From Hypanus sabinus (lineage: Eukaryota), in assembly GCF_030144855.1 (NCBI RefSeq), contig NC_082708.1, forward strand, positions 147,932,001 through 147,996,000: a stretch of DNA of 64,000 nucleotides, written 5' to 3'. The first letter of the stretch is position 1. Each line of letters starts with the position of its first letter. The notes under the pieces are model-generated. The model did not search any database and had not been told where the DNA came from. It worked only from the letters and a program-made list of their open reading frames with translations. Below are positions 2,291-4,770 of this stretch, in pieces. The position numbers were made by a program, and so were the translations under genes.

Positions 2291-2484
2291 ACTGTCTCCA
2301 TGCCAAACACCATGAATCATTACCCAACAGAGGACAAACAGGTGTTGGTGCCAACCTCTGTGCCTTTGCTTGGAAAGCACTTTTGATCAAGGAAGGACCA
2401 TGCTGCTCAGAGGAACTGTGAAAGTGTTGAAAGCAGTGGTCAGAATACACCAATTTATATCGATAACATATCTGAAAAGCTTTC
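2291..2484 (+). pseudogene. RBM25: RBM25 retrocopy fragment 1 (N-terminal region to start of RRM)
   Basis: Translates TVSMPNTMNHYPTEDKQVLVPTSVPLLGKHF*SRKDHAAQRNCESVESSGQNTPIYIDNISEK; vertebrate RBM25 as recalled reads VLVPTVSMVGKHLGARKDH...GPTTTVFVGNISEKAS. In-frame TGA. Confidence 0.8.
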
Positions 2485-3255
2485 GGTAAGAATAAACTTC
2501 TCTTGGGCTTCCAGCTGAGTACAGGTTTCGATTATAACTGATGTTTGAGTGAAAAAGTCTGCCATCTTCATCAGGGATGATGCCTTGGCATGTCTAGTCT
2601 GGTGGTATTTATACCACCTTATTTGCAATCAAATTCCAGTTTTTCCTCAAAGTGAGACCTTTGTCTTTGTTAAAATTCTTTTTCTCCAGTTTTATTTCAA
2701 TGGCTTCCTTTACTGGGCAGTCCCAAATGCCATTGGTGTGGTGCAGTAGTTCTGTACCTTCGACGACAATCCGATGGCCATTGCGAATCCAATGTTCTGT
2801 TACCATCAATTTCTCCAGATAACCTAAATGGATACAATTCCTGTGCTCTTTGATGCGGGTTTCCACCAAGCATCCCATCTGGTCAATACCCACTGCTCTA
2901 CATTCACAGGAACCTGAGTCCCAAATCATCTTTGACCCACAAAAGCTGTGATTTGAGCTTCCTTATGGGTTTGTGGTTGGTATTAATCTGGTATTTCTTC
3001 CGGATCCTGGTGATCCTTCCAGAAACTGTGAAAATATTGGGGAGACAGGCCATAGCAACAGGTTCATCCTTGTTGTTCAGTTTCCTGGCTTTTCCATTGG
3101 CCGTCTTAAGGACCCATTTGATTTCCTTCACCTTGTAGCCATTCTGTAGGAATGTCATGTGTAATCATTCAGACTCTGGGTCCAAAATAGTTTTCACACG
3201 GTTAATCAAAGTAGAACTGCTCTACTTTGGGAGGTATGATAGTGGCTCCTATTGT

Positions 3256-3771
3256 TGCTTTGACCCCAGCATCTGCAGAGTACTTTGTGTTTATGATTTG
3301 GTACTCTGCTGCGAAGTCTCTTCGAGGTATGCCTACCCTGAAGAAGTTTAAATCTTCCCTTCGATGGAAGTTCAGTGAGACCCTTTCTCTCTGCTCCTAC
3401 TCTGTGATCTCCGCCTCTCTCCACCTCTGACCACATCCTGACCCAGACCCGCTACCATAGCCATGTCCCCTTCCTGGGAACATGTCCGCCTCTTTCTAGT
3501 ACCCATAGTGCCTTCCCCTTACATTCCTTCTTCACCTTTCCTGCCGATCCCCTCCCTGCTTCCCCTCCCCCACCCCTTGGTCTTTCCCCTTACTGGTTTT
3601 TCACCTGGCACCTACCAACCTTCTCCTTCCCACCCTCCCCCCACCTTCTTTATAGGGCCCCTGCCCCCTCCCTCTTCAGTCCTGATGAAGGGGCTCGGCC
3701 CGAAATGTTGATTGCTTGTTCCCATGGATGCTGCCCGACCTGCTGATTTCCTCCAGCGTGTTGTGCGTGTT
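3256..3771 (+). mobile_element. Internally deleted Neptune-type mini-PLE, circularly permuted monomer
   Basis: Flanked by GCTCCTATTGT (3245-3255) and GCTCTTATTGT (3772-3782); begins with the distal pLTR tail, then the ORF start, then the pLTR body with hammerhead. Confidence 0.7.
3677..3714 (+). ncRNA. Minimal type I hammerhead ribozyme motif (PLE-associated)
   Basis: CAGTC-CTGATGA-A-GGG gctcgg CCC-GAAA-TGTT-GATTG: core boxes, stem II and stem I (CAGTC/GATTG) all present. Confidence 0.7.
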
Positions 3772-4491
3772 GCTCTTATTGTGAGTGGGTTTCTGATAGA
3801 CGCCATGTCTGAGGCCGCTGTGTGGTTTCCATCATATTAGAATGTCTTCATGAACAGGAGGCAACCATTCTTCTCCATCTCCATCATAAATGGAATGTTT
3901 GGGTGTATTCTGTTCAGATGGTTGTGGAACTATTGGAGTGTCTGAAGTCTATGAGGCCACTCATTGAAGGTTTCATCGATGCATCCTAATGAAGCTTTGG
4001 GGCATAAGTGTGATGAACTCGGAGCTCCCTCCTCAAAGTCTTCCATGCAGAAATTAGCAATAGCCAGCAACAAGGGCAATCCTTTGGCCACTCTGTCCGT
4101 TTGCCCATAGTAGATCCCCTTATAGAGGAATTACGTCGATGTAAGGGTGTTTTCCAAAAGGTCATTGGGACCCTTATCAAACCTTGACTGCACGAGGACC
4201 AAGCTATCATTAACAGAAACTCTTGTGAACAGTAAAACCATGTCAAAACTGACCATTATGTCCTCCAGGTTCTGCTGGATGTTGGTTATCGTTTTTAAGA
4301 AAGTCGGTTGAATCACATCCCCCAATAAAGGGAGACAGCATAGTTGGAGAATTTATCCCAGTGATGACAGGCCTCAGGTGAACCCTCCTTGTGTACCTTA
4401 GGCAGCCTGTAAAGTCTTGATGGTACTGGTGTCCGAGGCAGAGTTGTCCCTGTATATGTCTGCTGGCAGTCTAGATTTTTTCAGTGGTGTC

Positions 4492-4770
4492 CCAGAAAGA
4501 AAAGAGTCAATGGAGATACAAAAACAGAGGATTCATCAAAGAATGTTGTGGATGAGGAAAGAGATCAAATCACAAAGGGAGCAATAGAAGGATTAATAAG
4601 AAAATATACCAGAGTTAAATGCATCTTCCAAAGATCCAAATGTACAAAATAGAGAAGAAAAAGGAAAGAAGAGATGGAGATAAAGAATGTCAACGAGACA
4701 GAGAACAGTGTGAAGAAGAGAGGGAATGTGACAAAGACAAAGAAAGGGATTGAAGTAGATCCAGAGAGAG
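4492..4770 (+). pseudogene. RBM25: RBM25 retrocopy fragment 2 (post-RRM linker and RE/RD-rich region)
   Basis: RKKRVNGDTKTEDSSKNVVDEERDQITKGAIEGLIRKYT/ELNASSKDP...EEKGKK...DKDKERD*SRSRER, versus recalled RBM25 RDQMIKGAIEVLIREYSSELNAPSQE...EEEKGKKE...DRSRSRE; frameshifted. Confidence 0.8.

Follow-up and report, generated by a model that had tools for sequence, protein, structure and literature searches.

Replication-defective transducing retroviruses with Gag-onc fusions carry a host cDNA in the place of pol, in frame with the upstream proteins, and depend on a helper for their propagation. Two further relevant systems are known among retrotransposons with long terminal repeats (LTRs), namely the LTR-mediated retroposition described by Tan et al. 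(2016, Genome Res; PMC5131818) and the plant LTR retrotransposons carrying gene fragments that are reviewed in PMC13317346. Here we examine a stretch of 64,000 nucleotides from Hypanus sabinus (NCBI RefSeq assembly GCF_030144855.1, contig NC_082708.1, positions 147,932,001 to 147,996,000 of the forward strand), which we refer to as the window and to which all coordinates below apply. Positions 130-7424 of this window are best read, with a probability of about 0.8, as an old and decayed copy of a non-autonomous Ty3/Gypsy family of stingrays in which pol was replaced by a fragment of spliced cDNA from the splicing factor gene RBM25, and which then multiplied.

As in the Gag-onc retroviruses, a cDNA sits in the place of pol, is fused in frame and probably goes along with dependence on a helper; unlike them, the carrier is an endogenous Ty3/Gypsy element in which no env was seen, the cargo comes from a splicing factor rather than a growth gene, and the spread was through the germ line. 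The cases of Tan et al. (PMC5131818) likewise consist of a partial, intron-free mRNA copy set in the same sense amid non-contiguous parts of a single LTR element, truncated at its 3' side and devoid of its own poly(A) and target duplication; they also have a short similar motif at a junction, to which the purine motif described below may correspond. Those cases are single recent loci, whereas the chimera found here is multi-copy and common to several species. With the plant elements (PMC13317346) it shares host fragments that lie within the element and are propagated along with it, and differs from them in its cartilaginous fish host and its RBM25 cargo. A literature search returned no paper connecting RBM25 with LTR elements. 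That LTR elements can take up host genes is already known, and the RBM25-carrying, multiplied vertebrate family is a further example of it. In animals, most captures on record are single loci, while here a chimera with a portion of an essential splicing regulator in it has apparently given rise to a successful helper-dependent family in cartilaginous fish. The resulting series of copies can be used to study the route of capture (template switch or splicing) and the mobilisation in trans of elements without pol, as well as the effect of RBM25-like copies on annotation, on small-RNA silencing and on the parent gene. In ray genomes, copies of the chimera will end up wrongly annotated, as genes or pseudogenes resembling RBM25.

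The carrier element, hereafter copy A, was delimited by comparing positions 1-5200 with the whole window using BLASTN, together with local alignments. Its 5' LTR lies at 130-480 on the plus strand (start approximate) and is ~61% identical to the LTRs at 33747-34085 and 25608-25907 of a second, pol-bearing Gypsy element, copy B (25608-34085, plus strand), which is itself recognised by the mutual match of its LTRs at 25677-25900 and 33855-34100. The final 43 bp of the 5' LTR of copy A were found again by local alignment at 7382-7424 on the plus strand, a remnant of the end of the 3' LTR with 86% identity to positions 433-475; because the LTR end recurs there, we take element A to span ~130-7424. 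Inside these limits, a decayed gag region (590-1484, plus strand; 70-73% identity to B 26031-26741 in BLASTN) and a protease region (1868-2290, plus strand; 75.6% identity to B 26745-27161) are together collinear with B 26031-27161 at 70-77% identity. The gag region contains a Cys/His knuckle-like stretch around 1250-1340 and had no match in Pfam, and positions 1913-2119 gave a weak match to the Pfam family gag-asp_proteas (E=0.003).

The match between A and B ends exactly after GATGATGCCACA at position 2290 (last letters GCCACA). Gypsy sequence resumes in copy A at 4776-4861 on the plus strand, corresponding to B 33603-33696 (89% identity over the first 57 bp, 78% overall), that is, to the 3' internal region ~90-190 bp upstream of the 3' LTR of B. 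The original prediction had copy A following a sister copy B up to 2290 and rejoining Gypsy at ~4774. The break at 2290 and the return to Gypsy both stand, the latter being placed at 4776 by the alignment to B, but with only ~75% identity B belongs to a related family and is not a sister copy. Between the two breakpoints, copy B carries RVT_1 (27093-27638, weak), RT_RNaseH_2 (28024-28200, 4e-8) and rve (28996-29502, 4e-9), in the order reverse transcriptase, RNase H and integrase that is typical of Ty3/Gypsy, an order seen in the relative B alone. A Pfam search of the ~2.5 kb at 2291-4775 of copy A found no domain of these three enzymes. Because A leaves B at 2290 and rejoins it at 4776, with the pol of B in between, copy A has no reverse transcriptase, RNase H or integrase, as had been noted from the sequence before (the RVT_1 match in B being weak). 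What is seen of the carrier in copy A thus amounts to LTR remnants and a weak protease match, with no pol, and the host sequence described below is flanked on both sides by collinear Gypsy parts in the same orientation, a feature of LTR-mediated retrocopies. Translation bore out the same-orientation switch at 2291, and the peptides quoted in its support were found in their frames. From 2201 to 2383 a single frame stays open, leading from the protease over the junction to RBM25, and reads ...KVLDDAT / TVSMPNTMNHYPTEDKQ / VLVPTSVPLLGKHF, followed by a stop.

The identity of the cargo was approached through a 70-amino-acid stop-free stretch at 4440-4649, which led to a single protein, then to exon-containing open reading frames (ORFs) and finally to the contigs that hold them. 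This protein, P0001, comes from a Logan contig and reads MK / DTKTEDSSDDVVDEETKRRDQIVKGAIEGLIREYSSELNAPSQDQDAHPRKKKKEKKEE / VWYF...; as a query it returned 50 ORFs without a name, located on genomic contigs from numerous vertebrates. When 15 of these ORFs were compared, one conserved block was common to all of them and had the same two end points in nearly all; the residues upstream of it were unrelated and pyrimidine-coded, and in most of the ORFs the next residue downstream was a valine (GT...). Because of these fixed ends, the pyrimidine-coded residues before the block and the GT-encoded valine after it, we regard the block as a single exon with intron flanks. Four contigs (L001, L002, L004 and L007) contain collinear exons with AG/.../GT borders: exon 1 reads either MSFPPHLNRP... 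or, in other contigs, MSYPPPLNRQ...; exon 2 (TPMIP.HMG...) has a length of 48 nucleotides; exon 3 reads VL.P...TTVFVGNISEKASDML.RQLL.; exons 4 and 5 complete the RRM, the latter ending in ...DEWKAKK...NG; the conserved block forms exon 6; exon 7 has the sequence DINAME.EDDKRDLISRE...; and exon 8 is rich in arginine and glutamate. An RRM_1 match was found in one comparator exon (L001), and the last ORFs of L007 matched PDB 3V53, the solved PWI domain of human 'RNA-binding protein 25', with E=2.7e-16 and 5.3e-13. RBM25 consists of an N-terminal RRM, a central RE motif and, C-terminally, a PWI domain (PMC10639069), and the comparator genes show their RRM, RE-rich and PWI parts in that same order.

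Compared with these exons by tblastn with composition correction, the sequence between the Gypsy parts of copy A is, as judged by homology, derived from RBM25. The matches to exons 3 and 6, together with the match of the C-terminal comparator exons to PDB 3V53, bear out the RBM25 origin that had been proposed from the peptides alone. Other searches were negative: the junction ORF returned no candidates, the short RBM25-like pieces had no match in PDB or Pfam, and a 40-amino-acid piece, too short a query, found 0 matches among 1.84 billion representatives and likewise none in the ESM Atlas. Neither an RRM nor a PWI domain is present in the window copy, the RRM-coding part having gone at the site of a later Penelope-like insertion and the PWI part never having been in the fragment; the window copy is a fragment of RBM25 and not a gene. 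As a separate observation, many 'metagenome' or Logan proteins (P0003, P0005, P0006, P0011 and P0048) are single vertebrate RBM25 exons read into introns; such unnamed exon-ORF proteins are probably host contamination and can be used as markers of exon boundaries. The contig L002 also contains sequences of Tc1/mariner-type transposase at 12055-13150, in the intron after exon 6, and at 17923-18984, just past the exon 8 region, with HTH_Tnp_Tc3_2 and DDE_3 on the called gene.

Two pieces of RBM25 can be assigned to exons. The first, at 2342-2485 on the plus strand (VLVPT...NISEKLS), matches exon 3 of L002 with 44% identity over 48 amino acids (E=3.6e-7); it has one in-frame stop at 2384, lacks the final 27 nucleotides of the exon and ends at 2485, where its end had been set before. 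The second, at ~4479-4674 on the plus strand, joins the end of exon 5 to exon 6 (..QWCPRKKRVNG/DTKTEDSS..RDQITKGAIEGLIRKY..ELNASS..) and carries one frameshift and a 9-nucleotide deletion. Exon 6 of L007 matches window positions 4509-4610 and 4612-4674 (E=2e-6), and the exon in P0001, the closest of the exon ORFs, matches 4515-4610 with 77% identity (E=1e-12). A start at 4492 had been proposed for this second piece and needs to be moved to about 4479-4482, the final ~33 nucleotides of exon 5 being present; likewise, the 'EEKGKK' stretch aligns with the K-rich end of exon 6 (RKKKKEKK) and not with the later EEEKGKK motif. The second RBM25-like stretch as a whole, ~4479-4775, is read in three frames.

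It is the boundary of exons 5 and 6 that speaks to the origin of the cargo. The window runs through ...QWCPRKKRVNG/DTKTEDSS... at the point where comparator exon 5 ends in ...EWKAKKKSANG or ...EWKAKKRNANG, and a spliced query of exons 5 and 6 aligns straight through the junction (tblastn, E=1e-7). The DNA at the boundary, AATGGA/GATACA, has neither an AG nor a pyrimidine tract, and intron 5 is ~100-445 nucleotides long in the comparators. Intron 5 is absent from the window, and therefore an origin from spliced RNA is supported at the exon 5/6 junction; the expectation that an exon junction would be crossed with no intron is borne out there, against fish genes.

Two flanking stretches are less easily placed. 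The 51 nucleotides between the Gypsy break and exon 3 (2291-2341, plus strand) are in frame, purine-rich and end in ...ACAG; they are possibly a remnant of the 48-nucleotide exon 2, and gave no significant match to fish exon 2 at the nucleotide or protein level. At the other end, a stretch rich in R, E, D and K (4675-4775, plus strand) is possibly RBM25 exon 7 or 8, from the RE domain. Its match to the exon 8 peptide (E=2e-10) is gone with composition correction, and its match to exon 7 nucleotides has p~0.03.

The chimera is not confined to copy A. We aligned Logan contigs from four DNA-type runs with four organism labels to positions 1800-5000 at 80% likeness, and added four further runs labelled RNA by guess, for a total of eight runs and at least 6 organism labels. 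All four DNA-type runs contain 210-500-nucleotide contigs that bridge 2290/2291 at ~82-85% identity (aligned over 2168-2419, 2125-2409, 2145-2449, 2204-2439, 2241-2478 and 2159-2413), and bridging contigs were also found in the RNA-labelled runs (2214-2415, 2220-2441, 2255-2411, 2274-2449 and 2241-2449). In each DNA run, ~90-100 distinct contigs cover position 4573, and the summed depth over the RBM25 parts is about that of gag and protease and far above that of the 5' part of the Penelope-like insert. Because diverged contigs from several organisms bridge 2290/2291, the chimera must have multiplied after it had formed, which upholds the suggestion in the original prediction that it was once mobile as such. 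In some contigs a variant is found at 4774, at a distance of 36 letters from the contig end, and such contigs suggest that the 3' junction, too, is bridged by family members. Some other copies jump from ~4606-4653 to ~4775-4786, with joints 4606>4777, 4652>4775 and 4653>4786. Finally, contigs with 96-97% identity span the unique Penelope/RBM25 edge of copy A (4242-4521 and 4292-4521) in two other organisms, and copy A with its insert thus predates the split from these two organisms.

How the two junctions came about can be considered in the light of these data. Reverse transcription would account for both, either by template switching between co-packaged RNAs or by one such switch after a spliced read-through transcript. 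The purine motif GAGAAGAAAA occurs at the rejoining point (4776), in copy B at 33603 and in the K-rich end of exon 6 at 4653, and a switch at a place of short similarity would fit the 3' junction. The second of these routes resembles oncogene capture and concerns the mechanism only: a Gypsy element in an early RBM25 intron would have given rise to a read-through transcript spliced to an exon acceptor, and the 3' junction would have followed by template switch within the purine-rich motif present in both partners. In its favour, the RBM25 homology that can be demonstrated sets in with the first codon of exon 3 (2342), right after ...ACAG, and the preceding 51 nucleotides are close in length to the 48-nucleotide exon 2, so that either reading puts the start at an exon start; the fusion is also in the same sense and in frame with the protease. 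Copy B, however, has no GT right after the breakpoint (GCCACA/GAAGTG), a point tempered by its being only 75% identical to A; the assignment to exon 2 lacks significance; and an exon-only query cannot extend past the exon, so that the 'exon start' is partly built in. On balance we consider this route unlikely, though far from negligible. A further idea, which we regard as doubtful, is that such an oncogene-type capture produced an in-frame fusion of gag, protease and the RBM25 RRM that gave the chimera an aid over its helpers, for example through binding or packaging of its own RNA or through interference with splicing. If true, the benefit of the fusion would account for the many copies of a pol-less element in several stingray species.

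Capture at the DNA level, by which repair or recombination would have brought genomic RBM25 exons, intron flanks included, into the element, is very improbable. It draws on two short motifs: 'gtaag' comes right after ISEKLS (2486), and 'acag' stands in front of exon 3 (2341). The former was tried as the start of an RBM25 intron and rejected, as it lies 27 nucleotides ahead of the true end of exon 3: in all four comparator genes, exon 3 goes on for nine codons (DML.RQLL.), or 27 nucleotides, beyond ISEKAS before the GT. Because exon 3 continues in this way, and because the alignment of the family contigs to the window ends at 2475-2478, we assign the 'gtaag' to the end of the inserted Penelope-like element. 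The fusion of exons 5 and 6 with no intron also speaks against a genomic source. Weaker still, to the point of being scarcely credible, is the proposal of a local accident, by which a processed RBM25 pseudogene made by a long interspersed nuclear element (LINE) would have inserted into pol in a single Gypsy copy and later been trimmed by deletions. Element A has indeed been hit repeatedly, by a LINE as well as by the Penelope-like element, but the identical Gypsy/RBM25 junction recurs in contigs that are numerous, diverged and drawn from several organisms; the RBM25 part lacks both its ends, continues the protease frame and has neither poly(A) nor target duplication. That neither a poly(A) nor a separate target duplication marks the RBM25 edges (2291 and 4775) agrees with what had been noted before. 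None of the three findings named beforehand as speaking against a captured RBM25 transcript was made, namely a best match to a gene other than RBM25, RBM25 intronic flanks, or a target duplication or poly(A) belonging to the pieces themselves.

A non-autonomous Gypsy family carrying spliced RBM25 cDNA would have arisen and decayed as follows. In the founder, same-sense, spliced RBM25 cDNA would have taken the place of the stretch that begins just past the protease and stops a short way ahead of the 3' LTR region; this cDNA would have covered exon 3 (perhaps already exon 2) through at least exon 6 and continued the protease frame. The chimera would have retained its LTRs, gag and 3' internal region and been copied by the enzymes of autonomous relatives; because these parts were kept but reverse transcriptase, RNase H and integrase were lost, mobilisation was probably in trans. 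It would then have grown to many copies across several related species. Copy A was damaged further at a later time: a Penelope-like element inserted and ~0.2 kb of RRM-coding sequence is gone at the site, a short repeat entered between gag and protease, a LINE now occupies most of the place of the 3' LTR, and stops and frameshifts built up. The replacement of pol, the RBM25 identity of the cargo, the lack of intron 5 and the recurrence of the junction in many copies are shown by the data, whereas the formation of the junctions during reverse transcription and the mobilisation in trans are inferred.

Several points weigh against this account. Only one exon junction, that between exons 5 and 6, is demonstrably crossed, and the comparator genes come from distant fishes and not from the stingray's own RBM25. 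The stretch at 2291-2341 could be the end of a retained intron rather than exon 2, and the low complexity of 4675-4775 makes its assignment to an exon tentative. Codes or guesses underlie both the kind of run (RNA or DNA) and the organism assigned to it, which limits what can be read from the runs on expression and on taxonomic range, and the copy number is a rough reading from contig counts and summed depths.

The Penelope-like retroelement that separates the two RBM25 pieces lies at 2486-4478 on the minus strand and is truncated at its 5' end. Read by eye on that strand, it shows reverse transcriptase motifs at 4440-3780 and a GIY-YIG-like, Cys-rich endonuclease region with ...ETRIKEH... at 2929-2612; its nearest ESM Atlas cluster bears GIY-YIG (score 0.95), and Pfam gave no match. 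The ~0.2 kb of RBM25 lost at its insertion site comprises the last part of exon 3, all of exon 4 and the greater part of exon 5, and hence nearly the whole RRM. Contig depth drops to hundreds at 4368-4474. Nested in the insert is a short repeat of 563 bp (3217-3779, strand not assigned), across which other Penelope copies jump from 3216 to 3780; elsewhere it forms tandem head-to-tail units of ~515 bp, seen as joints that go back 515. No hammerhead or other Rfam family was found in window positions 1-8000 at E<=0.1. A short repeat is also nested between gag and protease at 1485-1867 (strand not assigned) and is missing from copy B, in which 26741 runs straight on to 26745; other places in the window that match A 1493-1872 are 55552-55826, 19740-20084 and 43092-43175. 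One short repeat family has inserted twice in element A (1485-1867 and 3217-3779) and is also present at 19740-20084, 43092-43175 and 55191-55826. Most of the place of the 3' LTR is taken by a 5'-truncated LINE of CR1/L2-like type (4900-7365, plus strand, 5' edge approximate), with RVT_1 at 5897-6346 (E=5e-10).

The other copies also bear on the damage within the RBM25 parts of copy A. Most of them have G for T at 2384, which turns the TGA stop of the window into Gly, and T for C at 4573, which changes Thr to Ile (RDQIIKGAIE). One high-depth contig has ACTAAGAGG inserted after 4559, adding T-K-R and giving ...DEETKRRDQ... as in the real exon. The changes at 2384 and after 4559 restore residues of the real exon, and that at 4573 restores the Ile of the mammal-type exon. 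By this comparison, the stop, the Thr at 4573 and the lack of T-K-R are private decay of copy A. Further downstream, ~150-220 contigs per DNA run go on past 4832 with CTACAACCACCACGGAGGAGGCCCCAGAAC; most relatives of the Gypsy 3' region thus depart from copy A, and what is seen in copy A at this position looks like a local deletion. The Gypsy 3' region near 4832 outnumbers the RBM25 part several times over.

Copy B, too, is interrupted, at 29796-33436, by a 3.6-kb element with direct repeats at 29796-30154 and 33047-33436 that are 79% identical; a fragment resembling a LINE-type reverse transcriptase lies at ~31085-31489 within this insert. Upstream of copy B, positions 24403-24606 of the window hold a tandem array with a 34-bp unit, GGAATTAGAGGTCAGTGATGAACAGTGATGTGGG, in at least 5 copies, of which 3 are identical.

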